From positions 310,001 to 374,000 of the forward strand of contig JBLDXI010000018.1 of the NCBI GenBank assembly GCA_047495785.1: a DNA stretch of 64,000 bases, read 5' to 3'. This DNA is from Lepidodermella squamata (taxonomy: Eukaryota; Animalia; Gastrotricha). Below are positions 2,517-57,866 of the stretch, piece by piece (the first letter of the stretch is position 1; each line of letters opens with the position of its first letter). Position numbers and translations under genes: made by a program. The notes beneath the pieces are model-generated. The model made no database searches. It saw only the letters and a program-made list of their open reading frames with translations, and was not told where the DNA came from.

Positions 2517-3466
2517 ATGTCTGTAAACCGAGCGACGAAAAGCGGTATCAATCGCGAAGTTCAGCAGAAGGTGAGAGGTTTCGTTTAACTTTACTGCAGT
2601 TTTGATTTTTTGAGAAATTTAGATCAACGCCAAGTATGAAGTTGAATTGGCTCGCCAGTGCTTGCAATGGATGCAAGAAATAGACCAAAATAAGGACCAC
2701 GTTCGGGACGTCGATGGAAGCATGGACAACGTCTATGAACAACTCAAGGACGGATTCGCCCTAGTACAGTAAGCAAAACCCCGATAGGTTGTTTCTCATT
2801 TACCCTAAATTGATCTGAATCTTGAAATGTTACACAATTTTATTAAATTTTCTCAAGCTTTTGTCCAGCTAAGAATTGTTTTCAAAATCTCTCTCTTTTA
2901 GAAAATCATTATTAGGTAAATCGATTTTAATGAATAAATCAAATATAATAGGATTTATTTACTTATTTTTCCAATTTTTGTAGCTTGATGGAAAAATTGC
3001 AGCCCGGTTCATTCAAGGCGCAAATGCTTGAGAAACGGGCGACAATGGCGTTCAAGCAAATGGAGTGCCTCGAGCTGTTCATCAAAAAGTCGAAAGAGTA
3101 CGGCGTGGCTGACATCGAAGTTTTCCAAGTGCCGGATTTGTACGAGCGCCAGAATCTGCACCAGGTCGTTCTCATGCTGCAGGCGCTGGCTCGGAAAGCC
3201 GCCCTCAAGGGACACCCTGGCTTCGGGCCAAAAGAGTCGCAAGAACGCCGGCGGTCTTTCACTGAAGAACAATTAAGACAGGTAATTTGAAAACAAATCT
3301 TTGTTTGCAAAGTTTAGACAATTTTAAAATTAATTTGTTTTAATTTTACTCGATTTTTGTTTGATAGGGCGAGGCAATAATTGGTCTGCAAATGGGAACG
3401 AACAAAGGCGCCAGTCAATCCGGCATGACTTTCGGAGCCCAGCGCCACATCACCGATTCCCACTAA
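2517..3466 (+). CDS. Transgelin/myophilin/MP20-like calponin-homology protein (4 exons: 2517-2570, 2623-2768, 2984-3281, 3368-3466)
   Basis: GT-AG splicing gives a continuous ORF: MSVNRATKSGINREVQQK-INAKYE...LKDGFAL...FKQMECLELF...FQVPDLYERQNLHQVV...GPKES...[34 protein letters not shown]. This is a CH domain plus one calponin repeat. Confidence 0.93.
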
Positions 3467-5030: not shown

Positions 5031-7904
5031 TTATTCCAAACTGTCATAACACACTGCCAAAAAACTCACCACAAGGGGCAACACTATAGGAATCAAATTA
5101 GTTGTAACAAACGCCAAAGCCGTGACGGCAATGGATACGTGCAGAGCTGCTGCATTGCTGGCTTGTAGAATGACGACGACAATGCCAGCAACTACGACAG
5201 TGACTGCGCAATAGAACGCATTGACGGCGAATCGCAGCTCGCTAGAAACTGCTTTTGAATTACGCGGGCGATTCACATTAGGTGCAGCAGTATGTTCAAG
5301 CGTCGAAGCCATTGGATGAATTTTCGCCGGGTTCTTGCGCTTGAAAATTCAAAATTGACACGCATCAATAGTAACGAATTTGAGACAAGTACCATTGTCG
5401 CGAGTGTGAAAATAATAACAAGACATTCCTGAACCTTTTCGGACTACGGCGACACTTGTTAACAAGAAGTTTATTTGCCGACGTTTCGGTTGTTTAAACA
5501 CTACCTTCTTCAGGGCATCAATCAAACGGTTGAGTGCTTACAGCACGGCGGTAAATAAACTTCTTGTTAATAAGTGTCGCGGTAGTCCGAAAAGTTTGAG
5601 GAATGTCTTCTTATCAAATCAATAGTGGTGTTAAAATGCTAAAAATAACGGTTTCACTTTTCCTCTTCTCGACTTGAAAGCTTCCGGCTTTGAAGAAATT
5701 GGAGACAGATCATCACGTAGTACTAATACATTCGCTCTGAGACAGTTTAATAATGACTTTTGAAGAAACAAGTTAAAACAACCAAATGCGCAGAATTTGA
5801 TTTTAAACTATTTTAAAAGACTTACGGGTTTAAGCTGACGTGCTAATAGAAACGTAGCCATTCCCGTGAGAACGTGTAGCGCAGCCATGGAGAGCAGCAT
5901 TGCGACAGCGATTGTATTGCCGGCATCAAATTGACAAGAATAGCGATACGGAGCGAACACTATGCTGTTATCCGCCGTGTACAGCTTAGGTTCTTCGACT
6001 AGCTGAGATCCAAGCCCATTGAAAATGACTAGAATTGTCATGAGCAGCAGATGGACCAGCAAATACGGAGAAAGGTACTTGATAGCAAGAACAACATAAC
6101 GGGGCATCGCCTGGCCCATTCTGGCGCTGATGCTCCGTTTTCCCGCATCAAATTTGACGTAGTTACCCATTACGACGATGCTGTAACCTGAAACCAAGAG
6201 ATAACCGGCTGCAGAGCAATGGTTCAGAACCATTTTTGGCGAGTTTTGACTCGGTGGCAGGAGAACGACAACGAACAAAGCGACAACAAAATTTCCGCAG
6301 AGAATCAACCGATTTCCGACAATCAAGCTTCCATCTTGGGACTTCAATTTGACCATTACTCCGCAGTTAGAAACTGCAAATAAAAGGGCGATTGCGAAAA
6401 TCGCCCAGTAAGCCTCGGGACTAAGCGTTGTAGCTGGTACGGGTATCACTTGGATTTTATCTCGCGGCGGTAACTTGTCAAGAGTTGCCCATCTAACGCC
6501 GCCGTTTATGTACCGAATCGAGCGATCACTCGCTTGATAGAAGGCTACAATAGGCCGTTGAAACGAGTTGTTAACGATCTGGGCCTGGCGGAACACAACC
6601 GGATTGTAGCCCTTTGTATTCATAGCGTTCTTCTCTTCGAAATAGTAAAACGACCTTGAGCCATTTATTGCAGTATTGTAGACTGCTCTTTTTAGAACTT
6701 GAACGAAAAATAATGATGGCATGCTCTCAGGTCCCTTTGAGAGGGTAGAATTGTAATCAGACACTAGCAGCTGTTCAGCCTGGTGAAGAGCATAGCCGGC
6801 GAATAGAGTTAGGTCGTAGCAAACTGGCGGGAAATTTGACCAGCCAGGTGCTTTTTGAGCTTCGAAAACTTTCGCTTCCATGCCCTGTATGAATTCCGCA
6901 CCATTCAGTCCAGAGCTGTCCTCGTAGCTCGCTCCGAATATGTCACTCATAGCCCCAAAGCTGAATAGCAACCAATTACGGGCAATATCTGATAACATTA
7001 CCCTCGTGCACCAGCTGTAAGGTAAAGCAACTGTCGCTGGGTCGTAAGATGCCCATGTGGAGGCTAGGAAGAAGTAACTTGGCCCAAACATTCCCTGACG
7101 GTGTAGCCAGCATGACAATGAAACTCCGTTGTTTGAGTTCATCATAAAAATTCTGGGTTCAACCTCCCGCATTGCTTTGAACATAGGAATCATCTCCTCC
7201 GGCCTCATAGCCGAGCTGATTTTACTGTACCAAACGATTTTGAAATCGCGGGATGTGAAGTAACTCATGACTTCATTCTCGACGCCGTTGAAGAAAGGAA
7301 TATCTTCTGTTATAACAGCAACATTCGACCAGCCCATTTTAAATGCAAATTCAGCAATGCCCTCTTGAGGTACTAATGACGACTTTGTGAGTGGGAAAAC
7401 AGCGTTGTATCTTGCTCGATTTATTCCTGGATCTGGCGATGAAAAGTAATGCGTGAAGCCTATGTGGTTCAGTGGCTTCATTGTTGCTGAGATCAAAGCT
7501 TGGCCAATAGGCACGCACCAGCCAAGCAAAACGACAGGAATTCGATTTTGGCTAGGCCAAACTAATTCTCGCAGAGTTTGCTGAATTGCCAGGCCATCGT
7601 TGCATTGATCGTCTATCATGTCGATTTGGAGTTCGTAGCCTGAAAGCCAATTTGGATCAGCGTGTAGTTGGTCCAAGGCTAATTCCATGGCCTTCGTGCA
7701 AATTGGACCCGTTGGACTCGGCCCTCGATAGTTGATATGGCCCAGAATTTTCAAAATTGTTGACCTATTGCTTTTGTTCGCGAACGCTGACTTGATGGAT
7801 GAATCCATGGATGCATTGCTATACACGCGACTTGACGGCTGGACGCTTTGGCACAGGCAAAACGCACTTCTTAGCACGAATATTAGGAAATACCCAAGCA
7901 ACAT
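5031..7904 (-). CDS. Divergent class C GPCR, GABA-B-receptor-like (copy 1); exons 7904-5826 and 5339-5031
   Basis: Signal peptide MLLGYFLIFVLRSAFC, then a Venus-flytrap/ANF-receptor-like domain (AMELALDQLHADPNWLSGYEL..D.QC, MGWSNVAVI, CYD) and a W..LPPRD linker before TM1-5. A phase-0 intron (CCC|GTAAGT at 5825, TTTTCAAG| at 5340) joins in frame to an exon encoding TM6-7. Confidence 0.8.
5420..5609. mobile_element. Penelope-like-element-derived inverted repeat in the GPCR intron
   Basis: 61-bp arms 5420-5480 and 5549-5609 are inverted copies with a few mismatches and enclose a minimal hammerhead motif of the type found in PLE pseudo-LTRs. Confidence 0.6.
5476..5517 (-). ncRNA. Minimal type I hammerhead ribozyme
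   Basis: Minus strand reads UGCC-CUGAAGA-AGGUAGUGUUUAAACAACC-GAAAC-GUC-GGCA. It has the CUGANGA and GAAAC cores, stem I UGCC/GGCA, stem II GGU..UGUUU/AAACA.ACC, palindromic ACGU stem III and a GUC cleavage triplet. Confidence 0.75.
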
Positions 7905-8138
7905 TTTTTTGATCAATGAAGATCGAGCCTTTTTGAGCGCGACTGAAATCTGTATTTGTCGCGTCTGATGGCAATAACTCATGAACGGATGCATATCCTG
8001 AAATATCAGATTCACGACCGGAGTGCTCAGGCAACTTGAATATGTTGCTGAGATGTCTGGAGGGATTATGACCATAAGTCAGTGTCATACCTGGACAATA
8101 TTGAACGGACGGAAATTGGCAGCTCGGTCTCTCGTTTT

Positions 8139-11428: not shown

Positions 11429-12275
11429 TTTCTGATTGAGTGTAGACTTGCTTTTTAAGAGAAAACTTGAAAGCTGATGATAACCCCCCAATTTCGCCGC
11501 CGTTATATACCCTCAAATAAGCGTAGGAAAAGCATTGCCCTCAAGAACAAGTTTTGACAGCTGTCTGTTGGCGTGATGCCATCAACATCTTGAAAGTCAT
11601 AAACCATCAGAAGACCGTGAAACCGGCGTGATCCGGCGAAACTTCGGACCTCAATGTGTAACCAGATGGTAGAATTCGGTGCTTCACCACATAAAAAAAA
11701 GGGTGGAATCACGCTCGATCTGAATTTTTTCTATTTATCCACCTGCTGGACTTTAAACTACTGTCACAGGGGTCTCTTAGTTCCTAACTTGCCCAAGCAT
11801 TTGCGGTGTGAGTGCAAACTCTGCATCACAACTGAATTTTTATCGCTGAAAGCTAAAGAGAAATGCTTGCGAAAATCTGAGTATATGAGCTGTTTGCTGA
11901 AAATGACTATGCAGGTGTTCGGCTTTTCAGAATCCGTCCGCGGCGATCAGAACTGAAAGCATTTCTGTCCTGAGGCATGAGGGCCTATCATCTACATATT
12001 TCATTTCCCCTTTTTACCTGAAAAAAACTGAAGCAAAGTGACTGGTTAATTAGCAAAATTACGCAGCAGGCAAAACTACGGAGTACTTGCGAGGCGTGCG
12101 TGATGCCGATGTCGCAACGCATTATTGGGAAATTCACCACACGTATCACATTTCTCAGCCCACATCAGCCCCCATCTCTTCTGCAAGAAGTTGTGCATCC
12201 AACCCTGTTGTTATGACATTCTTACCTTTACTCAACTGGAAAATATTCCATACTGAATTCGGCATTTTACTCAAG

Positions 12276-14576
12276 ATGAAAGCAGCAACTCTCTTCCAGC
12301 TGGCATTGTTATTGAACCTGGTGATAATTGTCTCAGCTGGAAAACCTCAGATTTTAGAAATGTTGTTTCTCACATCAGGCAATATCACAACATGCACGGC
12401 TGCCATGAAACTGGTTGTCGATACTGTCAACAACCGAAGCGACATTCTACCGAATTACGCCATCAAGCTGACGATTGCCACTGAAGGACCTGCTGCTTTC
12501 TTTTCCCCTCGAGAAATTATCAAGTTCCTAGACAATTCCGCTCGCGATAGGTCGTTGCTAGCCCCGATAATCATCGGACCTTCAGTGAGGTGCCAATCCG
12601 TTGCAGATATCCTCAAGGCTCATGACTTGGTTCAGCTAAGCGCAGGCTGCGCCGCAAAACCTCTCGTCGACCGGAAACGTTTCCCAAATTTATACAGGCA
12701 GTTCATACCAGCTGAGTCGGTGAATTACGCTCGAATAATTTTCGCCCAAAAAATTGGTGGTTGGAGACAAATTGCCCTGTTAACAACGGCTGATAACTCA
12801 AATACAAATGCTGTCTTACGAGCGCAGTATGAACTCAGTTTAGCCAATGGAATCGAGGTTGTATGGTTCGGGAGTGTTCCCGATATTGACGACGAGGCCA
12901 TTGATTCACTGAAGAAAAGTGACGCGCGCGTTATCATCATCGAAATGACGGACATTTCGCTCATTCTTAAATTTCTCTGCTTGTCGTATTTCAGTGGCAT
13001 AACAGGCTCGCGATATGTTTTCATTTTGCTATCGCAAATCTTTGTGAGTCCGTATTCTGCTGCCTTCAACGGGGTTCTACCGTCAAAATGTTCGAGGGCC
13101 GTGATTATCGAGCAGTATAAAGTAACATTTTGGACCGGGCCTGCTCTCAGCGCCCTTGAAGACAACGGCATCGCGTCGCTAGGCTTTGGTATTTCAGAAA
13201 TCGATCGCTACATCGACTCAGCTTTCAATAATACGAAACTGCCTGATTACGAGACTCGACACGTATGTTACGATACAGCTTTAGAGGCGGTTTTAACCCT
13301 AGACAAAGCCGATAGAATTCTTTCAGAGCGCGACAATCTAAGCCTCAACTCGAGGCAAGACCATTCAAAAACAGTTTTAGGAGTTATGACGGCTGCTTTG
13401 AAGGATATAAATTTCATTGGACTTCGCACAGGGCGAATGGCATATTCAGAAAGGCTTGAATTTGATTACGAGCCTATGTACTTGACACAGTGGAATGACA
13501 CCGCAAGATCAATCATTCCCATTGCGAAGGTTCAATTCACTAGTCGAAACTTGAGTCGATTGAGTGACCTGTCTCTTTACAACCTGACGATTCTAAATAT
13601 TCCTTCATGGACAACGAAATCAAATTTGCCCCCTAAAGACTTGTCTCGAATCTTGACCATAATCAACAGATTTCCCAGTGAGACTTTGGTACCGATTTTC
13701 TCTTCACTGGCGATTATAGCTACTATAATACCCCTGATTTTAGCGGCTCAGGATTGGAGCAAAATCTCAGAGACAATAAAAAAGGAGGCATTGTTTATTG
13801 CCGGCCTGGCATGTCTCAATATTTCTGCTCCATTATCCATTACAGAGCCGGAACTTGTTAGTTGCTATGCACTTCAAATTCTGGCGGTAACAGGGTTGTC
13901 CCTAACACATAGCGTACTATTTACTGATCAAATTGAATTGCTGAAATTAGCCAAGAAAGTTAAACTGCCTCGCAAGTCCTCTGCCATCACGCATTTCACG
14001 CAAGCAAGACTGGTACCGATGAAATCTTCTGCTTCTGCTTTCTCCGCGGTCATGATGTCAGTTGGTTCGCCTTTTGTTCCAAAATTGACCAAGAAAGAAA
14101 TCGCTATGATAGCGACATTCCTCGTCCTTAATTTGTTGGCACTAATTCTCAGATTCGCAGTTTTCGATAGTCTATCCATAACTGAGCAAAAAGAGCCAGT
14201 CCGTTACGATGAGCTTCTCGACAGCTATTTCGTGATTGTCACGTTTAGTTGCGGATCTTCGCAACAGTCGAATTGGCTGGGTGCTATTTCTCTAGCCCAC
14301 GCCATCGTCTTGGCGATTTGTGTCAGCTTGGCGTTCCAAAGCAGACACGTTCAAGTTTCAGATGAATCCCGCAATCGATTCATTTTCTTGAGGCTGGCAA
14401 TGCAAAACGCTGCAGTTCTATTTATCGCCTCCCTAGCTATCTTGTTTCTGCTGCAACAGACCGGCGCATACGTTCAATCGCTAACATACGCCATCGTTAG
14501 CATAGTTTATTCACTGAGCACAGGCGTGTTATACTTCGCTGGGAAATTCAAGACGAGGAGTGTTGAAGTTTATTAA
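12276..14576 (+). CDS. Divergent class C GPCR, GABA-B-receptor-like (copy 2), intronless
   Basis: Signal peptide MKAATLFQLALLLNLVIIVSAG. VFT-like domain (VDTVNNRSDILPNYAI, APIIIG, RKRFPNLYR, GWRQIA, LKKSDARVII, CYD), WTTKSNLPPKD linker, seven hydrophobic segments and a very short C-tail. Confidence 0.85.
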   Translation: MKAATLFQLALLLNLVIIVSAGKPQILEMLFLTSGNITTCTAAMKLVVDTVNNRSDILPNYAIKLTIATEGPAAFFSPREIIKFLDNSARDRSLLAPIIIGPSVRCQSVADILKAHDLVQLSAGCAAKPLVDRKRFPNLYRQFIPAESVNYARIIFAQKIGGWRQIALLTTADNSNTNAVLRAQYELSLANGIEVVWFGSVPDIDDEAIDSLKKSDARVIIIEMTDISLILKFLCLSYFSGITGSRYVFILLSQIFVSPYSAAFNGVLPSKCSRAVIIEQYKVTFWTGPALSALEDNGIASLGFGISEIDRYIDSAFNNTKLPDYETRHVCYDTALEAVLTLDKADRILSERDNLSLNSRQDHSKTVLGVMTAALKDINFIGLRTGRMAYSERLEFDYEPMYLTQWNDTARSIIPIAKVQFTSRNLSRLSDLSLYNLTILNIPSWTTKSNLPPKDLSRILTIINRFPSETLVPIFSSLAIIATIIPLILAAQDWSKISETIKKEALFIAGLACLNISAPLSITEPELVSCYALQILAVTGLSLTHSVLFTDQIELLKLAKKVKLPRKSSAITHFTQARLVPMKSSASAFSAVMMSVGSPFVPKLTKKEIAMIATFLVLNLLALILRFAVFDSLSITEQKEPVRYDELLDSYFVIVTFSCGSSQQSNWLGAISLAHAIVLAICVSLAFQSRHVQVSDESRNRFIFLRLAMQNAAVLFIASLAILFLLQQTGAYVQSLTYAIVSIVYSLSTGVLYFAGKFKTRSVEVY

Positions 14577-15096: not shown

Positions 15097-17463
15097 ATGG
15101 ACAAGATTCTCCTCGTAGTCCTGAACTTGCTACTCTTCGATAGCTTTTTTTGCGCTAAGAGAAGTCTTGAAATCTTGGGTGTCTTGAACGGCAGAGCGTG
15201 CAACACAGCTGTCCAAGTCGCCATTGACGCTGTGAACCAAAGTCCTTATCTTTTACCCGATTTCAATATTTCTATCAACAAAATTCTGCCGGAATACAGT
15301 GTCAGAGCAACATATCGCGAGGAAGGTGCTCAGGCAATATTCGCCCCAAGACGCGTCGTTGAATTCATCGAAAACTATGCGGAAAGTAGGCCGCAAAATA
15401 GCAGTTTAATCGCACCTGTAATCATCGGAACTTGGTTCGCCTGCATCACATCGGCCAGGGCGATTCGAGCTTATAACATGGTCCAATTTTCACCAGGCTG
15501 CAATAGCGTGCCATTCACAGCTAACCGAAAAGACCTGCCCAACATGTGGCGATATCGAAACTCCGTCGATTTAATGGGCCTAGGAATAACCTATGCAGTC
15601 CACGCAATAGGAAAATGGAACCAAATGGCCATTGTTTACAACCAAGCTAATGCCGCAAATTTTCAGTTCGCCCTAGGGCTCCAGAAACTGGTCAACTCAG
15701 TTGGCATCGATGTCGTTTGGTTCAATAATGTCGCCGATGTTGATGATCAGGTGATTGAGTCGTTAAAAGCAAGTAGAGCTCGAATCATCGCGCACGGCTT
15801 CAGTGACCCACTCTTTTTCAGACTGCTATGCGTGGCCTATATGAATGGAGTTAGAGCCCCTCATTATGCTTTTGTCTTCATTGCCCCTGCAGTGTTCGAT
15901 CCTAATCTTATAGATGAATCAACTCTTGTAAAAGGATGTACGAGAAAAATGCTTGCAGAACAAGCCGTCATCTCCCTTTATGCTGGAACTTTCACGTTCA
16001 GCCTTCAAAACTATGGGCCGACAAGTTTGGGCTTTGACCTAACGAAATTTGAGGAGAAGTATGAAAAGCTGTCTTATGGGGTCAAATTTGCGGATCACAA
16101 TACACGTCATCCTTGCTTTGATGCAGCTCAAGCTGCGTTGCTTACTTTACACAGGGCCAACGAAATGTTGAAGGCGACTAAGAACTTGACCATCGAGGAT
16201 CATGCCAACCAGCCAGAGATTGTTATGCAGGCCATAAATTCTTCAGTGCCTTCGATGAATTTCACTGGTCTAATGGGGCATTATCGCTACTCCCCGAGGT
16301 TGGAATTCGACTATTTACCAATCCATGTCGCTCAAGTCGATCCTCGAGACATGTCGTTGAGAATTTTGTCTGAACTAACTTTTGCCGGTCAGAACATCGA
16401 CGATTTGTATAATCTGTCGCATTACAAGGTGGTAACGAAAGCCGAACCGCTTTGGTGGACGCGAAATGGCAAACCTGTCAATGATTTGTCAACTGTTGAT
16501 CATATCACTCTGACTTACCCTAATCAATTTACGATCCCTTTTGTTGCCATTTCACTGATTCTTGGCATTGTGCAGCTTTTTTGGTTCATATTGCGATATG
16601 CGAAACTTGGATCGATGGTCAGGCCAATTTCTCACCCTCTATCACCCGCGATTTTTGTTTCCGGATGCATGTTGCTAGATTCAAGTGTGGTTTTCTATGT
16701 GATAAACCCGGATAACTTGTCTGATGTGTGTTACCTGCGTCCATCTCTCAATATCATCGGAGTAGTTGCGTGTATTTCGTCGCTCATTTCTGAGAATTGG
16801 TCTATAAAGCAGAAAATCAAAATTCCCACAGAAATTCGTACCTCCCATGCTCGACTGACTCAACTTTCCGCAAGCAAATCTTTCCCGATTAGCGTTGGCA
16901 GTAACTACAAGATTCAGAGGACTAAGACAGTCGATCGCTTCCTTACCGGCCAAACTGTTGGTTGGAAACCAGCGTTATGTTCCGCTTTTGCCTCAATTGC
17001 AGCAATTTTCATGATGATAATCTGGATGACGACGTCACCTCCCGGAGTCGCAGTGCATTCAACAGGCGTTCAGTTTAGCGAGGCTGAAGATACTTACGTT
17101 GAAATCAGCTGGAAAGCTTGCGAACCCGACAAAGCCGATCCTTACTGGATCTCAGCAATTGCTGGCAGTTTGGCGGCGTGTTTTGTGCTGAATTTAGTCT
17201 TTGTTTATCAATCTTGGAGCCGCCAACTCAGGCCCAAGGTTATTCATCTGGAGGCTCGCGTTATTCAACTCACTTCAATTAATTGCGCTATGCTATTTGC
17301 ATTGGGCGCGGCTTGTTCAGCCTTGATTCAAGTTAGCAGTAGGGATAAGTTCGATGAGCTTCATAGCGGAGTAATGGCTGGATTCTTGTTGCTGCAATCT
17401 GCATCAGCTACACTAATCAGATTTTATCCGCATTCAACAGCAACTGTAGAAATAGAAATATGA
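15097..17463 (+). CDS. Divergent class C GPCR, GABA-B-receptor-like (copy 3), intronless
   Basis: Signal peptide, then AIDAVNQSPYLLPDFNI, APVIIG, RKDLPNMWR, GKWNQMAI, LKASRARII, CFD and a WWTRNGKPVND linker before 7 TM segments. Motifs are collinear with copy 2. Confidence 0.85.
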   Translation: MDKILLVVLNLLLFDSFFCAKRSLEILGVLNGRACNTAVQVAIDAVNQSPYLLPDFNISINKILPEYSVRATYREEGAQAIFAPRRVVEFIENYAESRPQNSSLIAPVIIGTWFACITSARAIRAYNMVQFSPGCNSVPFTANRKDLPNMWRYRNSVDLMGLGITYAVHAIGKWNQMAIVYNQANAANFQFALGLQKLVNSVGIDVVWFNNVADVDDQVIESLKASRARIIAHGFSDPLFFRLLCVAYMNGVRAPHYAFVFIAPAVFDPNLIDESTLVKGCTRKMLAEQAVISLYAGTFTFSLQNYGPTSLGFDLTKFEEKYEKLSYGVKFADHNTRHPCFDAAQAALLTLHRANEMLKATKNLTIEDHANQPEIVMQAINSSVPSMNFTGLMGHYRYSPRLEFDYLPIHVAQVDPRDMSLRILSELTFAGQNIDDLYNLSHYKVVTKAEPLWWTRNGKPVNDLSTVDHITLTYPNQFTIPFVAISLILGIVQLFWFILRYAKLGSMVRPISHPLSPAIFVSGCMLLDSSVVFYVINPDNLSDVCYLRPSLNIIGVVACISSLISENWSIKQKIKIPTEIRTSHARLTQLSASKSFPISVGSNYKIQRTKTVDRFLTGQTVGWKPALCSAFASIAAIFMMIIWMTTSPPGVAVHSTGVQFSEAEDTYVEISWKACEPDKADPYWISAIAGSLAACFVLNLVFVYQSWSRQLRPKVIHLEARVIQLTSINCAMLFALGAACSALIQVSSRDKFDELHSGVMAGFLLLQSASATLIRFYPHSTATVEIEI

Positions 17464-17777: not shown

Positions 17778-18357
17778 AGGCCCAGACGGGGATCGAACCC
17801 GTGACATTATAGGGCGACTTTGCAGTCACATGACTAAGGTCAAAGTCCGTCTATTTTTTTCTGGTCTTGGTCGCGCGGTCGCGCAGTCGTTGTGGTCGGG
17901 CGGTCGTGTAAAAAAATGCTCGCTTAAAAATGAGAGTAAAAAAACGATGCACCACCAGGAGTCGAACTAAGGATGTTGGAATAAAAAGCCATGTTTTTGA
18001 TCCACTACGCCACCAGCTGAAGAAATCGGCCGGGAAAATATTTACACCCATATTGTGGCCAATCGGATCCGCTGATAGAAAGTCTTAATTGCCACGAATT
18101 GGTGGCGTAGTGGATCAAAAACATGGCTTTTTATTCCAACATCCTTAGTTCGACTCCTGGTGGTGCATCGTTTTTTTACTCTCATTTTTAAGCGAGCATT
18201 TTTTTACACGACCGCCCGACCACAACGACTGCGCGACCGCGCGACCAAGACCAGAAAAAAATAGACGGACTTTGACCTTAGTCATGTGACTGCAAAGTCG
18301 CCCTATAATGGACCTTCTGTTTACAAGACAGATGCTCTACCACTAAGCTACTAAGCC
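17778..18357 (-). pseudogene. tRNA-Thr(TGT) gene interrupted by a MITE
   Basis: Segments 18357-18311 and 17804-17778 reconstitute the intact tRNA-Thr at 21005-21076 (1 substitution) once the 506-bp insert and the 2-bp duplication are removed. Confidence 0.9.
17805..18310. mobile_element. MITE, 506 bp, 211-bp TIRs, CA...TG ends, 2-bp TSD (GA)
   Basis: Arms 17805-18015 and 18100-18310 look like perfect inverted copies (CATTATAGGGCG...CGCCCTATAATG) around an 84-bp spacer. The empty site is seen in the paralogous tRNA at ~21048. Confidence 0.92.
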
Positions 18358-18433
18358 GGCTGATGAAAAGCGGCTACATTGAAACTCCTCAGGTCTATGG
18401 TCTATGGTTAGAACCCTGAAATCGAAAAAGTAT

Positions 18434-18505
18434 CGACCCAGATGGGACTCGAACCCACAATCTCCGGCTCCGGAGGCCGACGCCTTACCATTAGGCCACT
18501 GGGCC
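18434..18505 (-). tRNA. tRNA-Arg(CCG)
   Basis: Full cloverleaf identical to the copy at 20858-20929; anticodon loop CTCCGGA. Confidence 0.9.
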
Positions 18506-18582
18506 GCCTTCTGTCAACTTGGAATAATCGATTATCCATATAGGGAGGAGACAGATTCAGAGTCCTGAGCCGCTGAAAAAAT

Positions 18583-18654
18583 TGGAGATGCCGGGGTTTG
18601 AACCCGGGACATCTTACATGCAAAGCAAGCGCTCTACCATTGAGCTACATACCA
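18583..18654 (-). tRNA. tRNA-Ala(TGC), acceptor stem damaged (probable pseudogene)
   Basis: Anticodon loop TTTGCAT. The 5' end reads TGGTATG instead of GGGGATG, breaking two acceptor pairs. Confidence 0.7.
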
Positions 18655-18683
18655 GACAACAAAAGGCATCATAGCTTGAATAG

Positions 18684-18748
18684 AGGTTCCGGCGGGGTTC
18701 GAACCCGTGACCTTCTCCGTGTGAAGGAGACCACTACACTACGGAACC
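18684..18748 (-). pseudogene. tRNA-Val(CAC) pseudogene with 8-nt D-arm deletion
   Basis: Matches 20562-20634 but lacks TCATCACG from the D-arm. Confidence 0.85.
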
Positions 18749-19154
18749 TGTTAGCCTTAAAATTGAGCAGATTGGCAGATTGACTACATTGAACAAGAAA
18801 GAGAGCACAACTGTGGAATAATAGATCGGCGACATTGTCCGAGCTGAGTGTCTGTTATGCTATTGTCTGGGTTCTTAATTATTCTGCCTCAGCGAACCTG
18901 ACCAAGGTTCGGCTTCCAAACCAGTTTGCTTTTTTCGGTTCTTGGTTACCAGCTGTAGATTTCACGATGATTTGCTTCACCTGTATGCGGCTACCTGTGA
19001 CTCACAGTTTTAACCCCTGTGGTATTTCAGTCTTAAAATTGTAACGGCAAAAACCACCTACAGCTTCTCAAGTTCTCACTATGAATGGCATGAAACCTAC
19101 GTCACGTTAACACGTTGACTCACTTGTCAGGTACGACGGCCGTAACGCGAGGCG

Positions 19155-19190
19155 TATAAAAAGTGAACAAGCGCGCCGTTTCATTCATTC
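19155..19190 (+). promoter_or_regulatory. Core promoter (TATA + Inr) of the orphan membrane-protein gene
   Basis: TATAAAAAG at 19155 and TCATTC Inr-like motifs at 19181-19190, ~30 bp downstream. Upstream TGACTCA (18998, 19116) and TACGTCA (19098). Confidence 0.55.
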
Positions 19191-19255
19191 AGCCGCCAGC
19201 CAACAAGTCTTTTGTATACTATCAAGTAAATCTAATCTACATTCGCAATCTAATC

Positions 19256-19666
19256 ATGTCAGTCATCGGCAGCAACAACTACAGGGCGAAAAGCGCGTCC
19301 CAGAGCGACATCGTGTCGGCCATCTCGATGCCACAAGCAGCACCTGTTGTCGTGTACCAGCAACAGCAACAGCAAAAGGACAAAGGCTGCACGCGGAAAA
19401 AGTGTTTCATCGGCACGGCGCTGGGCGTGTTCTTCGGCCTGCTCGTGCTCGGCACCATCATCTACGTGGTGATGGTGGTGGAGTCGCAGTGCTACCGCGG
19501 CTGCCAGCGCCTGTGCACCGACGACAACCACTGCACGGACACGTGCTGGAAGACGTGCTGGAAGGCGCAGTGGACCAAGTGCCCCGAGGACGGCGCCCGC
19601 GCCTGCTCCTACATCCTGTGGGACAAGGCCGTCATCAACATCGGCGGCCTCTTCGGCAAGAAGTAA
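19256..19666 (+). CDS. Orphan small type II membrane protein with Cys-rich (CX3CX3C x2) C-terminal domain, 136 aa
   Basis: Single TM FIGTALGVFFGLLVLGTIIYVVMVV preceded by basic residues and followed by 8 Cys. Strong GC3 codon bias, TATA upstream and AATAAA at ~19832. Confidence 0.75.
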   Translation: MSVIGSNNYRAKSASQSDIVSAISMPQAAPVVVYQQQQQQKDKGCTRKKCFIGTALGVFFGLLVLGTIIYVVMVVESQCYRGCQRLCTDDNHCTDTCWKTCWKAQWTKCPEDGARACSYILWDKAVINIGGLFGKK

Positions 19667-20273
19667 AGCCTCAGACGCGTCTCTTTATGGCTCCCAATTC
19701 AATGGTGTAATCTCTTCAAGAGCTGCTCACTAGCAAACCAAATTTCGAACAATTGTCTTTGAATATGTTTTTACACGACGCATCGTTACCACATCGATGC
19801 TTACTTTTAGTCAATTCAAATATTTTTTATAAATAAATACGAAATATTGCAAAAGGAAATGTTCTTTCAGTATCTTTGTTTGGGGAATTTTATATGAAGA
19901 TAGAGAAAAAAAGGATTTTGAGATCAAAATTATTCCCGATACAACTAGCGGAATCGGTTTCTTTCGAAAAAGATGAATGGCGCATGGTTGTCAACTCCAT
20001 TGAAAATTATGAATTCTACACGAAAAGCAGAATCCTCGACTGTGGGGGTGAGGATGGGTGAGGATCATTCTTCGCTTGCCTTCGCCCCCTCAAAACCGGA
20101 AACGGTACACGGCGCTCAGTCTCGAAGAGGCAAAATAATAATAACTATTATTATTATAAAGAAAATACTGAACGGCAGAGATAGGTGATGTTTTCGGTCA
20201 CAGTCGCATCAATCTTGCAGCACCAATCTTGCGAGTTGAATGCCCATACACTCACAGTGCAGACTTTCAGGCA

Positions 20274-20347
20274 GCCTCCTTGGCTCAGTTGGCTAGAGCG
20301 CCAGTCTCATAATCTGGAGGTCGTGAGTTCGATCCTCACAGGGGGCA
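20274..20347 (+). tRNA. tRNA-Met(CAT), elongator type
   Basis: GCCTCCT/AGGGGGC acceptor stem, anticodon loop CTCATAA with T31-T39, TTCGATC T-loop. Confidence 0.9.
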
Positions 20348-20429
20348 GCTTCAATCTTTTTCGATTGAACTCAGTATGTGAACAATAGACCGCCTCACGA
20401 AAGATTCGATAAACGTTGTACATAATATA

Positions 20430-20485
20430 GGCCATGTGCATGGATTAGGATCCTGCGCTTTCACCGCGGCGGCCCGGGATTGAGT
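20430..20485 (+). pseudogene. Degenerate tRNA-Glu(TTC) remnant
   Basis: GGATTAGGATCCTGCGCTTTCACCGCGGCGGCCCGGGATTGAG resembles the D-to-T arm region of eukaryotic tRNA-Glu; the acceptor stem and B box are lost. Confidence 0.5.
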
Positions 20486-20561
20486 TTTAGGGAAGTTTTG
20501 AAGTCTACAGTCAAAAGAATCAAAGTCTCCTAGCAAGAATGAAAACCCCTGAAAACAGCAG

Positions 20562-20634
20562 GGTTCCGTAGTGTAGTGGTCATCACGTCTCCTTCACACG
20601 GAGAAGGTCGCGGGTTCGAACCCCGCCGGAACCT
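20562..20634 (+). tRNA. tRNA-Val(CAC)
   Basis: GGTTCCG/CGGAACC acceptor stem, anticodon arm TCTCC-TTCACAC-GGAGA, GGTTCGAACCC B box. Confidence 0.88.
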
Positions 20635-20711
20635 CGACTCAAGCTATGTTTTTGGTCTGCTGATCTATCTAGATAAGCTATTCTAGAGATAGTTTGCTTT
20701 ATCTTGTACAT

Positions 20712-20783
20712 GGGGATGTAGCTCAATGGTAGAGCGCTTGCTTTGCATGTAAGATGTCCCGGGTTCAAACCCCGGAATCTCCA
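20712..20783 (+). tRNA. tRNA-Ala(TGC)
   Basis: GGGGATG 5' end with G3.U70, anticodon loop TTTGCAT and a downstream T-run. One acceptor mismatch (G7/A66). Confidence 0.82.
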
Positions 20784-20857
20784 ATTTTTTCAGTGGCTCA
20801 GGTCTCAGAATCTGTCACCTCCCATGGATAATCGATTATTCCAAGTTGACAGAAGGC

Positions 20858-20929
20858 GGCCCAGTGGCCTAATGGTAAGGCGTCGGCCTCCGGAGCCGGA
20901 GATTGTGGGTTCGAGTCCCATCTGGGTCG
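20858..20929 (+). tRNA. tRNA-Arg(CCG)
   Basis: GGCCCAG/CTGGGTC acceptor stem, anticodon loop CTCCGGA, T-run terminator downstream. Confidence 0.9.
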
Positions 20930-21004
20930 ATACATTTTTATATTCCACGGATATAGCCAAAGAACAGAGGAGTTTCAATGTAGCATTTCTTCATCAGTTC
21001 AACC

Positions 21005-21076
21005 GGCTCAGTAGCTTAGTGGTAGAGCATCTGTCTTGTAAACAGAAGGTCACGGGTTCGATCCCCGTCTGGGCCT
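21005..21076 (+). tRNA. tRNA-Thr(TGT)
   Basis: GGCTCAG/CTGGGCC acceptor stem, anticodon arm TCTGT-CTTGTAA-ACAGA, T-run terminator downstream. Confidence 0.9.
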
Positions 21077-47600: not shown

Positions 47601-47820
47601 ATCAGCTCGGTGCTTGTGAGCAATGGAATAGCGAGAAATTACTTTTGTTGACAACGAGTTCTGCGGACATTTGCAGCATTTGGGCCAGTTTGTGAATTCG
47701 TGGTAGGTCGACATCATCTACTACTTCCCACTGCAGAAGTGTTTCGAAAACAGCATCGGCTTGCCTTTCGACTTGCTCCTCGTCAAATCCTTCAATTGTT
47801 GATAGGTTCAACGGGGGCAT
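38666..47820 (-). CDS. CEP290: Centrosomal protein CEP290 (ciliary transition zone), about 11 exons, roughly 2,100-2,200 aa
   Basis: Long coiled-coil exons with CEP290-like segments: N-terminal MPPLN, YENGYGLRDAVDEIK, ENEELRRKLG, VIRHQQSLIY.DY, LEMKELNERERAEHA, LVEKLRGQINEKEKKTQQLAKAL, DLEKTIALLKKV and C-terminal FGPEFFQELENLKYSY. GT-AG introns link the ORF-track pieces. Confidence 0.92.
42264..42347 (-). tRNA. tRNA-Leu(TAA) inside a CEP290 intron, same strand
   Basis: ACCAGAG/CTCTGGT acceptor stem, anticodon arm TCAGA-CTTAAGA-TCTGA, long variable arm GGGAGTAATCCC, downstream T-run. Confidence 0.92.
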
Positions 47821-52478: not shown

Positions 52479-53570
52479 TGATAGAAATCGTGTTGTTGTG
52501 TTAATTCTCGCCTTCAATATTTTATGATATTTTATACGGTTTATATTTAGCTCAGTGTAATATACAAACGTTTTCGAATGCTCGCGACAAGTTTTACTCG
52601 ATAATAGGCAATTTCGACGAAACGGCTTGCGAAGAAATTTTTCAGCGTCAACATTATTGATATTATATTATTAGAGGTGGGATTTATCGAATTTTTCATG
52701 CAATTTTCTCACTTGTATTCAAAAATTCGAAACAACTGAAATTCGCTTTTTCAGCGCCTATAGATTAGATATTTGGAAGCTATTCAATCACCAATTCATA
52801 ATTCAATTTGGGTTGTGATTTATAAACTACATCTGGTTTCTGCCATTCTACTTTATTCAACCTGGAATTTTGCATAGCTTATATTAAGCATTCATATTCA
52901 AATTATTTCATCAACATTTATCAGTCTGTGTTTGAATGTTAAAGTTCGAAGTTTTTGACTGTTCAAGAAATGAGATTGTTGGTAATTGTTGACGCTGAAA
53001 AATTCAAATGATCGCAACCCGTTGATTTTCTGGAATGACGATGGCTTGAGATTTTCAATAACACGCGCATGCTCTTGTTTTGTTGTGGTTGTGCAGGCGC
53101 GATTCGGCTGTGACAGCGTGCTGCTTGCTTCTTTTCGCTATTCTATCAGCCGTTCTTTCTGTCTCTTATTACAAAATTGACATCGATTTAACAAACGAAA
53201 AATATCAGTTTTAGCATCTTATTTTTTGCAGCTCTTCGTTTCATCTTCTTGTTGATGCTTTTATGCCGATCAAACGCATGGAAAAAGACTAACAATAACT
53301 GATGAGAAAATTTGAAATAAAACGCCAGAAACATGTCAATTTTCTGCTTTTTTATTCCTTTTTATGAAATCAGTCGTAGTATCAAAGTTCGCAAAATAAG
53401 TAATCGCGATTTCTTTACTTTACATAATATTACAGAATTTCCTGATGACAAACAGCACAAAAAGCAAAACACATAGAAATATGTCCAGAGGCGGCAAAAT
53501 TACGGGAACAGTTTAGAAGCAGCAAGCCATGCGAAAATTTGTAAAACGGGAAGTGAAAGGCCCATTTTAT

Positions 53571-54299
53571 TCAAGTTGGTCGGCGCAAATTTTCGAGTCG
53601 TTTCAACAAATCGTCGTCAGCGTCCGACGACGCGGCAGGTCCGCCACCCGAAGCCGAAGCTCCGCCGCCTCCCGAGGCAGCAGCAGCCGCAGCAACGCGA
53701 CCAGGCCCGGCAGAACTAGCAGTGGCCGGAACCGCCTTGGCAGTGCCAGGAATTTTCGCCAAATCGTCGGTGATTTGGAGGCCCATTTCGTCGAGAACTT
53801 GCTTAACAATTTCCTCAGTCTCTTCTTCGTCACCCTCTTCGCCAATCGCGTCGTCAATTGCATCAGTCATCATCTCCTCCTTCATGTCCATAATCTCACT
53901 CTCCCGCTCGAATTCAGTCATAATTTTCTGAATTTGCGGTAAATTCAACTGACGGTTCATTTGATGAAGAGCTTTCGTTACGCCCTTCATCGCCTGAGCC
54001 ATTGCATCGGTTGATTTCAAGGTTTGGACCTTGAGTGACACGCCCTGGATGTTCGCTTTCATCATGATAAATTTTTTGATGTACCGCCTGGTTCGGACGA
54101 GATCTTTCGCCATGACTTTCACCGCGTCCATCTGCCCCATTTTCGCCATTTTACGAATATCATTCTTCGTTTTGATTTCCTGTTGCTCGAGGTGTTGACG
54201 CTCACGGTCGAGTTCGCGCATAGCTTTATTCAACGCACGTTGATTCTGACGCAGCAACTCCTGAGGAGTTTTTTTCCGACCAAACAGCCATTCCATCAT
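53571..54299 (-). CDS. CHMP2A: ESCRT-III subunit CHMP2A/Vps2 (intronless CDS)
   Basis: MEWLFGRKKTPQELLRQNQRALNKAMRELDRER...MAKDLVRTRRY...AMAQAMKGVTKA...EFERESEIMDMKEEMM and a C-terminal MIM1 DDDLLKRLENLRR. Confidence 0.96.
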   Translation of the reverse strand: MMEWLFGRKKTPQELLRQNQRALNKAMRELDRERQHLEQQEIKTKNDIRKMAKMGQMDAVKVMAKDLVRTRRYIKKFIMMKANIQGVSLKVQTLKSTDAMAQAMKGVTKALHQMNRQLNLPQIQKIMTEFERESEIMDMKEEMMTDAIDDAIGEEGDEEETEEIVKQVLDEMGLQITDDLAKIPGTAKAVPATASSAGPGRVAAAAAASGGGGASASGGGPAASSDADDDLLKRLENLRRPT

Positions 54300-54352
54300 T
54301 TTTAAAGACTGATTACTTAAAACTCTACAAATGAAATAAGTAAATCGTATAT

Positions 54353-55034
54353 TTATTTAGATTGAGCACCAGCGAAATCAGGGCTGATCGTAATTGAATT
54401 GATGCGAAGGCAACAAATCGGGCTTTGATGAACTGCGTGGGTGGAGCATAATTAATTCATGGAAATATTAAAAATACCGAAACTTACAAGAAATTCGACG
54501 GTAATTCTCTTTCGATATTTGGTACCAAACGGGTTTAGTATGGTCGACTGTCTTCTCTACAACTGTAGCTTCCACACGAACTGCACCATGAGGTAACAAA
54601 GGGCGACCAACAACCGTGAATGAGTTACTGCCAACCAACAAAACCTTTTCTAATACGATTCGCTCACCGACTTCGGCCGGAAAATGACCCTCCAAGACTA
54701 AAATATCTTCCTGAGTAATCAGGCGCTGTTTTCCAAGCATTTGAACGATAGCAAATGTCCGACCAACAGCTTTGTCTGCCACCTGAGAGGCAAAAGCCCG
54801 CTGAACTTCGGATGAAACCTGTTCAACCCGTTCAGCTGATATTTCAGGTAAAGGAATGGGGTCTCGATTGTTGTATTTCGATATTGTGGAGAGCAACGAT
54901 GGGGGAAATGGAGACTTTCTTTTCGGATTACGCGTATGCATGACGAGCCCATCAATGCTCCTCGATCCCCGGAATCGACGCGGGACCACGTACAGAGGAA
55001 GAGAGCTGGTAATGAGCCTCGCAAATTGAGACAT
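54353..55034 (-). CDS. MRPL21: Mitochondrial ribosomal protein bL21m; exons 55034-54488 and 54432-54353
   Basis: Basic N-terminal targeting peptide, GRTFAIVQMLGKQRLITQEDIL, GERIVLEKVLLVGSNSFTVVGRPLL and VRVEATVVEKT. A GTAAGT..GCAG intron adds FHQSPICCLRINSITI...SK*. Confidence 0.92.
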
Positions 55035-57866
55035 TGACAACTTTCAGCAGCAAACAAATTGGAGGAAGTTATAGGCTAACACTGACAGATGAAACTACCG
55101 ATGTGCAATTTAAAAGCGCTGACGTACCGTTCAATCCTTCAATCACTCTCCGGGCGTAACCTCTTTGAAATACTCACCCGATCAAACAAAAAAACTTTCT
55201 GATGAATCAGATCAACCTGGGGATTACGTTTTGACACACAATATATAAGAATTCAAAATAATACTTTTATAATTTGTTTTAGGTTGGTTCCAACAATTTT
55301 ATTATTTTTTGGCGGTATTTTTTCAAGTTTTATGTTTTAAGCTGGTCTCTCTGTTGTTTTTTTTGGCAGCGGACGTTGTGGTACGACCTTTCTTTGTCCC
55401 GAGTTATGCGCTATATGCCTGTTGACAGCTGCCGTGTTCCTGTTGTCACCTTTTCTTTACACTTCAGCTCCAATTTTTCGTGCGAACTCGTAGTTAATGC
55501 CAGTATTCTGTACGTTTCATGCAGTCAGCTGTTTTTTGGTTACAGCAAACCGGCAACATATGTTGCGCATTTAATAGCACAATTTTAACGAATTCGGCGG
55601 AATATTTGCGGAGAAAGGGAGTGAGAAAGCTTCGATTCAACATATGGTGAAAATATGGGTATAGTGGACTACTGTAAAACGTAATCCATCTCTGTCTGGT
55701 TTTCTAAGTGTGCCTGATGCTTGATAATGAGGGTTGGATCAATATAGTCTCTTGTTATATTTAAACTTCTGGTTACACGTTACATTGAGGTGGAATTTAT
55801 CCATAATTTTACTGCCACGAGTACATTGGCGTCGAACGTCAAAACAGTAAGAATGCCCGTGTCCGCATTGCCTTTCTCGGCTACCACTCATAAATGTTTG
55901 AGAAAATTGAAAGCTAGCAATTTCTGATTTTTTTTTCATTTGTTTGAGTTGCTTATCACCTTCAAAAGGAATATTCAGAGCTTTCGAACATTAATTAAAT
56001 ATGGCTCTGACGTAAAACTTGAGCAGCCCTTGGCCATTAGTTTTGCGACTTGTCTTCTCTTTACAGCAAAGTTACCTAGATACATTCTTTTTATTTGCGC
56101 ATATTTTGAGGCCAAGTGATCAGTTTAAAAGCCAAAATAACTTGACCCACTTGTTTTTTCTGTCATATGACTCAATTTGCTTGATTAAAGTTTTTTTATG
56201 CTGATGTGATCAGCTTGAAATAGGATGACCCGTGCTGTTTACAGCTGACTTTTTGCCGTTATTGACTACATTGCTGAATTTTCCTGGTTCAACGAGAGAG
56301 TCATTGTGATTATTAACAGGTAAGATCTATTCGGTGCATAGTTATGTTTTCCACGTACACCCGACCGGATATTATGCGAGACTTTTTAACGCTTCCTCTT
56401 GAAGCCTTATACAGTGCATGCTTCGTAAGCTTGAAAAAAGATTAACTTGTTATTAAAAACCTGTAAAGTCGAATAAATTAACTGCGATGTTGTTCTGCGG
56501 CGTGCCAAATTGAATTTCTTCATTCGCCGACTGGCTGACTGGCTGGCTGGCGGTTTATTAATCGACAGCTGAGTGCGCGCACGCGCCAGAAAAGCTGAAA
56601 AAATTCATATTGATCAGAGCTCGGAAAAAAGTTATTAGACGCGAAAAAAACGCGCGAGACCTTACCGATATAATGCACTTTTTATGTGATCGAAGTTGCG
56701 GTATTCGCCGGTTGAGTAGTCGAAAGTCAGTCACATGGATAAGAGCGCGAAAAAATCGATACTAGCGCGAATTTGCATTTCGCAGCGACGCCACATCTAT
56801 AAGCGCATATTTATCGATTTTTTGCCTCACCATAGTCTGTCGATAGTAGGTAGTAGTAGTTTTACTGCTGCTATGGAACGACATTGTGCGGTTATATTGT
56901 TTGCCTACTACATGTTTTAGTGCGGAAAAATACACACTTGGCAAAAATCTCGGTGTCTTTTATTAATACCTCGCTTTAACTTTATTATTAACTCACGGGG
57001 TGAGGTTTTTCGAGCGGAAAAATAATCTAGCGTGATTATTATTTCGATTTCATTAAATTTATGTGTTTGCATTTGACTCTGTTCGTATGTACCTATGAGC
57101 GGCGAGATGAGAGGGAGAAGAGGCGTATAGAGGCGCGATATGTCATTGAGAAGGGCAGAGACTGCTGCTGTTGAATAATTGATTTTCCCGCGTCTCTTTC
57201 CCTATATAATATAATACGTGTTTCGCTTTTTTCGACGACGACGACGACGACGACGACGAACAAATAAACCCTCCTCATCGTTACCTCGTCGTTAATTTGC
57301 TTGCTTGCTTTTTTGGATAATAATAATAATACTGCTAATGATATTCTATCCACATCATTCGCGTTTCATTCGAGTAAAAATCTAAGCTAAAATCATGATT
57401 TTTCGATGAACTATTTTGATTGAGCAAATTTTCGCTGAAAAATGGTACGTTTATACGGGCTGTACAACAATTGTGATTGTTCAACAATGTGTCTGCATGT
57501 TGTCTGAAAGTTGGTTGGAAAAATTCGCTAGGGATTGCTGCGATAACAAAATGTGTTTCGCCTTATCTCGCCGCGCTCTGATAACATCAAGCAACGCACA
57601 CGGGCTCTTTATTTTTATGCTATGCGACGTTTTTTCCCGTCTTCGTCGACGTCGTTCTTTATGCGATAATAATTTATTCTATTTGTGTGTACCTATATAA
57701 TGGCCATTCATTTAGTAGCCGCTTTTTTAGGGTCACTGATCATCATCGTCGAAATTTGCATAATTTGTTGTTTTTTTTCATCGTGTATTTTCGGTGCGTC
57801 AAACTTATGTTTGTTTTTCTGTTTTTTCTCGGCCAATTCTTTTAGCCAATTATAAGACGAGCGACG

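Follow-up and report, generated by a model that had tools for sequence, protein, structure and literature searches.

A candidate spliced-leader operon with a very short spacer between bL21m and CHMP2A in the gastrotrich Lepidodermella squamata

Introduction

The resolution of operons by spliced leaders (SLs) is a mechanism already known from worms and sea squirts. The operons of Oikopleura dioica are served by one SL and have intercistronic regions of about 23-30 nt (PMC1488885, PMC7986045). In the SL1-type operons of Caenorhabditis elegans, the poly(A) site adjoins the trans-splice site, and the upstream gene carries a canonical AATAAA (PMC1488885). The operons of Ciona intestinalis are without intercistronic DNA (PMC1488885, PMC2760879), and a mechanistic difference between them and the operons bearing an AATAAA is possible (PMC1488885). 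SL trans-splicing is also found in flatworms, the sister phylum of gastrotrichs in recent phylogenies (PMC12582326, PMC8629364). An overview of spliced leaders from 2021 names other phyla (PMC7986045), no paper on spliced leaders or trans-splicing in gastrotrichs turned up in the literature that we searched, and the genome paper of Lepidodermella squamata mentions neither (PMC11660948). Here we analyze a pair of adjacent genes from this gastrotrich, bL21m (MRPL21) and CHMP2A (Vps2), which are located in a stretch of 64,000 nt (GenBank assembly GCA_047495785.1, contig JBLDXI010000018.1, positions 310,001 to 374,000 of the forward strand; referred to as the window, with positions counted from its first nucleotide). 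We consider it probable that the two genes form a spliced-leader operon of the Oikopleura or C. elegans SL1 type.

The stop codon of bL21m and the ATG of CHMP2A are separated by 53 nt on the same strand, and only 25 nt lie between the AATAAA of bL21m and a potential 3' splice site in this spacer. With O. dioica, the pair shares a very short spacer, the unrelated nature of its two housekeeping genes, a compact genome with short introns, and the apparent use of the leader on single genes too, whereas the phylum is another one, the leader sequence is unrelated, and two leader variants are present. As in the SL1-type operons, an acceptor comes very soon after the AATAAA of the upstream gene, so that 3'-end formation and trans-splicing would use a common site and might be mutually exclusive; the difference is the distance of 25 nt from hexamer to AG, which may leave a few spacer bases. 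In the SL2-type operons of C. elegans, the cistrons are about 100 nt apart, and a U-rich element in the intercistronic region recruits the specialized SL2; the 25-nt distance found here does not agree with this type. The cistrons are nearly juxtaposed, as in Ciona, which resolves them by a single kind of leader, but the bL21m–CHMP2A junction has a canonical AATAAA. Features in common with flatworms are the length of the leader (about 32-36 nt), the Sm site in the small SL RNA genes, and the presence of both single and clustered target genes, but the SL genes described below lie within the ribosomal DNA (rDNA) unit, adjoining the 5S gene. The pair is notable for its tightness and its conservation.

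Results

Anatomy of the bL21m–CHMP2A junction

Exon 1 of bL21m was identified by profile and protein searches and exon 2 by translation in frame. Exon 1 matches the Pfam family Ribosomal_L21p (PF00829; E = 5.5e-16; 59.1 bits against a cut-off of 27; profile positions 2-83 of 99). The intron is required, because the frame hits a stop at 54468 without splicing, and the spliced coding sequence amounts to 547 + 80 nt, or 209 codons. CHMP2A matches the Snf7 family (PF03357; E = 1.8e-45; 155.1 bits against a cut-off of 27.3) and is single-copy in the genome. Its closest database proteins are animal CHMP2A proteins with at most 67% identity, which is not surprising for a phylum with little sampling, and no CHMP2A relatives were found in the bacterial and archaeal genome collection. 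The coordinates of all features are listed in Table 1.

Table 1. Features of the bL21m–CHMP2A unit and its upstream region in the window
Feature	Position	Strand	Details and basis
bL21m (MRPL21) exon 1	54488..55034	-	ATG 55034-55032; 182 codons + 1 nt; Pfam match
bL21m intron	54433..54487	-	55 nt, phase 1; donor GTAAGT at 54487, acceptor CAG (AG 54434-33)
bL21m exon 2	54353..54432	-	L21-type C-terminus; stop TAA 54355-54353
AATAAA poly(A) signal over the bL21m stop	54352..54357	-	sequence
Pyrimidine/U-rich tract and acceptor AG 54326-25	54325..54343	-	passes the acceptor test in both species
Predicted CHMP2A 5' untranslated region, 25 nt, inferred boundary	54300..54324	-	sequence; context before the ATG kept in the relative
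CHMP2A (Vps2) coding sequence	53571..54299	-	intronless, one open frame, 242 aa + stop
AATAAA over the CHMP2A stop	53566..53571	-	sequence; no same-strand gene downstream
Region before the bL21m ATG	55035..55060	-	weak acceptor-like AG 55042-41
Non-coding, likely promoter region of the unit, about 2.8 kb	55061..57845	.	holds GTGAGT 55177-55172

Downstream of the AATAAA, the minus strand continues with a T-rich tract (54351-54327) that leads directly into the acceptor AG, and a second AG at 54324-23 turns the junction into TAGAG. The spacer thus contains an unpaired 3' splice site between the two cistrons, downstream of the AATAAA of the upstream gene. A preliminary description of this locus had placed the bL21m stop, the AATAAA, the acceptor, and the CHMP2A ATG at these coordinates, all of which hold on re-reading of the minus strand. 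It had also stated that no donor is present in the gap. This has to be modified, since a weak donor-like GTAATC occurs 7 nt past the acceptor AG (bases 8-13). But an exon delimited by this motif would be a few bases long at most, and the motif is without plausible use. We read the hexamer at the bL21m stop as a poly(A) signal and not as a TATA box, because the CHMP2A stop likewise overlaps an AATAAA, although no same-strand gene follows there. The overlap of stop and AATAAA in both genes (53566-53573 and 54352-54357, minus strand) also implies 3' untranslated regions of only about 10-25 nt.

For a trans-spliced operon, these signals predict the following course of events. Transcription would start in the region of about 2.8 kb that is shared with the divergent tomosyn gene and would run through both genes. 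The bL21m message would be ended by the AATAAA, with cleavage expected 10-25 nt later, within the U-rich tract and hence 0-15 nt before the AG at 54326-25. A capped leader of 32-33 nt, SL-A or SL-B (see below), would be trans-spliced at this AG and provide CHMP2A with a 5' untranslated region of 25 nt. Because of the short distance between hexamer and AG, the U-rich tract would have to fill two roles, that of the downstream element in cleavage and that of the polypyrimidine tract in splicing. Cleavage and trans-splicing would therefore be squeezed into one site, where they may compete for the same precursor molecule.

Conservation of the junction in an environmental relative

Searching 5.8 billion proteins with bL21m exon 1 gave only two matches. 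The better one (57% identity) is encoded on three environmental contigs that belong to one relative (L005-L007), and exon 1 was found to be 57-79% identical to the gene of this relative. A bL21m from a Logan contig (P0122; 42% identity) is followed by a gene on the opposite strand and is uninformative on the gene pair. The gene order of the relative is tomosyn (opposite strand), bL21m > CHMP2A, PAE (opposite strand), and BBS2 > CEP290-like; the window has the same order, minus BBS2. Again, bL21m and CHMP2A lie on one strand, with a gap of 69 nt from stop to ATG, and a T run ends in an AG at positions 8760-61 of contig L005, 19 nt before the CHMP2A ATG. The sequence context immediately before this ATG, the C-terminus encoded by bL21m exon 2, and the position of the bL21m intron are common to both species. 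Both genes differ in the number of their introns, which have been gained or lost.

The similarity of the non-coding DNA of the two species was scored as a z value relative to shuffled sequence. The values were 1.0 for the spacer, 1.6 for the shared intron, 0.07 for the 3' flank of CHMP2A, and -0.7 for the region upstream of bL21m. The non-coding DNA of the window and the relative is thus no more similar than shuffled sequence, and neutral sites are saturated. Since it no longer aligns, the features of the spacer do not merely reflect recent common descent. We then defined an acceptor as at least 10 pyrimidines in 13 positions followed by AG, within 30 nt upstream, and determined the background in 264 kb of the genome. 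This rule is satisfied at 7.7% of positions, and by CHMP2A in both species. For both species to have an acceptor at most 30 nt before the ATG, the joint chance is therefore about 0.077 squared.

These data also bear on the idea that the two genes give rise to a stable bicistronic mRNA that stays unprocessed, with CHMP2A being translated by re-initiation or leaky scanning and with acceptor and AATAAA present by chance. The short gap on the same strand is compatible with it. But both species have retained the acceptor although their neutral DNA is saturated, the bL21m stop carries a canonical AATAAA, and re-initiation past a frame of 208 codons is inefficient in animals. An unprocessed message is therefore extremely improbable.

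The two ciliary genes of the relative, BBS2 and the CEP290-like gene, are separated by a gap of about 100 nt (L005:15206-15311). Their junction has the order stop, A/T-rich signal, pyrimidine tract with AG, 24 nt, and ATG.

Spliced-leader RNA genes in the rDNA

The assembly that we searched comprises 121.2 Mb in 151 contigs. Each rDNA unit of 8.46 kb contains two paralogous modules resembling SL RNA genes upstream of the 5S gene; in L008 (G000:C27:139300-142300), SL-A is located at about 918-815 and SL-B at about 448-352 of the minus strand. Both have a 12-nt 5' block in common, extend for 32-33 nt up to a GT donor, and then continue into a small structured RNA; the leader exons terminate in TTCTAAG or TTCTGAG. 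In the fold of SL-B, the exon is paired to the donor region, followed by a single-stranded AAUUUGA resembling an Sm site and by a terminal hairpin, which is perfect (GAGGGC/GCCCUC) and precedes a T run. About 496 copies of the SL-B exon with the intron start are present in the assembly. Among the 100 SL-B exon copies listed, nearly all are located in arrays of the rDNA unit, and the intron start is intact in all but 4 of the 100 rDNA-type copies listed; those 4 run into other sequence directly past the G at the exon end. No Rfam family matched the modules, as expected for a lineage-specific SL. Judged from these genes, the genome appears to carry the machinery for leader splicing.

Another rDNA region (L003; G000:C2:2925312-2928430) forms a palindromic junction that consists of a 28S 3' end, one 5S gene, and then the same 28S end in inverted orientation. 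This could be a chimera of multiple displacement amplification or else a genuine inverted boundary of the rDNA.

Dispersed copies of the leader exons

We also searched the genome for leader exons that are continued by anything other than the G of the donor. This revealed 32 SL-B and 28 SL-A copies consisting of the exon only, which are scattered over many contigs and joined to non-intron DNA. Twenty of these roughly 60 copies were read (L038-L057). In all 20, the leader ends exactly at the exon end, and it is followed by about 14 different continuations, which fall into roughly 9-10 groups. The 5' end of most copies is cut at varying points within the shared leader block. For two of the downstream sequences, some copies carry SL-A and others SL-B, and this use of either leader on the same retroelement gives no sign of leader specialization. 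Two scanned downstream sequences encode a gag-like open reading frame 1 (ORF1) with a zinc knuckle. The simplest reading, which is suggestive and not proven, is that the dispersed copies derive from reverse-transcribed trans-spliced RNAs. No processed copy of CHMP2A with a leader was present in the genome. At one site (G000:C54:3855407-3855517), three SL-B exon copies lie within 110 nt.

Similar layouts elsewhere in the genome

A second junction, between thymosin and EMRE, shows the same order of signals as bL21m–CHMP2A: AATAAA, 45 nt, TAG|AG, 26 nt, and ATG. Thymosin was verified by Pfam and EMRE by its DDDD family (E = 1.5e-21). Furthermore, RPLP1, thymosin, and the CEP290-like gene have a strong acceptor 32-58 nt before the ATG, which fits a use of the leader on first or single genes as well. 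The CEP290-like gene of the window is encoded on the minus strand, with its ATG near 47820 and the acceptor 58 nt upstream.

A survey of signals in the 264 kb gave a weak AATAAA peak at -60 to -40 and a weak acceptor peak at -20 to -10 from the starts of open reading frames. We do not count these peaks as support, because most of the short same-strand gaps between open reading frames are introns of 50 nt. The best look-alike in the window (2934-2984) was likewise discarded; it lies inside a cis intron of a calponin/transgelin-like gene. On the plus strand of L018 (5700-7682), two open frames with fibrinogen C domains are only 45 nt apart; they may be tandem paralogs or another tight junction.

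The upstream region and a possible shared first exon

The tomosyn gene is divergent from bL21m, with its first matched exon at 57846 on the plus strand, and has WD40 and LLGL domains. In neither species did we find a conserved coding segment in the interval of about 2.8-3.1 kb between tomosyn and bL21m, and bL21m is therefore taken as the first gene of the unit. The AG at 55042-41 in front of bL21m fails the strict acceptor rule in the window; the relative has a strong acceptor 2 nt before its bL21m ATG.

This region is also where a shared non-coding exon would have to end. In such an arrangement, which the preliminary description had offered as an alternative, the donor at 55177 would be cis-spliced to one of two AGs, that at 55042-41 or, passing over bL21m, that at 54326-25. 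The GTGAGT at 55177-72 and both AGs do exist, as had been described. Nevertheless, the relative has no alignable counterpart of the 120 nt upstream (z = -0.7), and the GT sites there are all weak, with no evident matching donor. Joining this exon to CHMP2A would skip a whole gene of two exons, which is unusual. Moreover, a leader system explains the unpaired acceptors more generally, including those of RPLP1, thymosin, EMRE, and the CEP290-like gene. We therefore think it highly unlikely that a shared exon accounts for the acceptor in the spacer.

Searches for transcripts

Exact-protein look-ups with CHMP2A from both ATGs, RPLP1, thymosin, and EMRE were all blank, and word searches with full-length CHMP2A, its first 75 residues, and bL21m exon 1 did not retrieve any near-identical protein. 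Scanning JGI data with the start of CHMP2A gave no match. The 20-mer from the 3' end of SL-B had two matches in the JGI scan, but their upstream flanks are without the rest of the leader, and we read them as chance.

Other features of the window

Ten tRNA genes are clustered on both strands at 18267-21076 (Rfam gathering scores). Three long open frames at 5808-8075 (minus strand), 12087-14576 (plus strand), and 15097-17463 (plus strand) encode domains of the type found in class-C G-protein-coupled receptors. All three have an ANF receptor domain, 7tm_3 is present in both plus-strand frames, and two of the three start with ATG.

Discussion

Several observations weigh against a trans-spliced bL21m–CHMP2A operon. 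Because five neighboring genes are ordered alike in the relative, the adjacency of bL21m and CHMP2A does not by itself point specifically to an operon. No canonical AATAAA is present in the spacer of the relative, where the stop is overlapped by AATAAT and a TTTAAA lies 28 nt upstream of the AG. An AATAAA together with a strong acceptor also occurs by chance in a cis intron of the window (2770-2984, plus strand), so that operon calls based on such signals only will give false positives. The fossil copies of the leaders are mostly 5' ends of retroelements and include no recognizable host gene or mRNA. Unspliced source copies of two leader-capped retroelement families were not found in the genome, and some leader junctions could stem from insertion at an SL gene followed by read-through, not from splicing. 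No transcript-derived protein or contig was found for bL21m or CHMP2A. Finally, an A/T-rich block might represent a TATA-like box, and the conserved CATTT at a distance of about 25 nt an initiator.

The last point raises the question of whether CHMP2A has a minimal core promoter of its own, located in the spacer or at the end of bL21m. Its transcripts would then start about 30-35 nt before the ATG, and the leader would be optional. The A/T-rich block (AAATAAATATA in the window and ATATTTAAAA in the relative) resembles a TATA box and is located 48-61 nt before the ATG in both species, and it holds its distance to the ATG and not to the stop codon. In the relative, the initiator-like motif reads CCATTTT, which fits YYANWYY. 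But such short A/T-rich matches are common by chance, and CATTT belongs to the pyrimidine tract that the acceptor needs anyway. A start at this position, about 8 nt before the AG, would leave an outron too short for splicing, which would render the conserved pyrimidine tract and AG pointless. The same AATAAA is found at the CHMP2A stop, where no same-strand gene lies downstream, and the same order of signals is seen at the thymosin > EMRE junction. Therefore, we regard a separate promoter as unlikely, while the arrangement of the A/T-rich block and CATTT agrees with it.

Taken together, the proposal of a trans-spliced operon, which had been put forward in the preliminary description, has more support than any of the alternatives and gains from the anatomy of the junction, the conserved acceptor, the SL genes, the dispersed leader exons, and the thymosin > EMRE junction. 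The addition of a leader at 54324, the poly(A) site of bL21m, and the co-transcription of both genes in a polycistronic precursor are what we infer from these sequences. It is conceivable, if doubtful, that gastrotrichs run a full SL and operon system, characterized at its tightest junctions, to which bL21m–CHMP2A would belong, by a poly(A) signal embedded in the stop codon, a U-rich tract of 25 nt with a dual role, the production of either one or the other mRNA from each precursor, and two leaders that are perhaps used differently. If this were true, the choice between upstream and downstream mRNA on each precursor would act as a built-in switch of the expression ratio.

For the annotation of this genome, models aware of trans-splicing are needed, because rules based on promoters or gaps would fuse genes or assign wrong starts. 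If confirmed, the bL21m–CHMP2A pair would be a minimal test case for 3'-end cleavage and leader trans-splicing on one short U-rich tract, and one that is conserved in two species whose neutral sites have diverged deeply. Furthermore, it would provide a data point on operons and leaders for the Gastrotricha, which bears on the question of whether these were inherited together with those of flatworms or originated independently.

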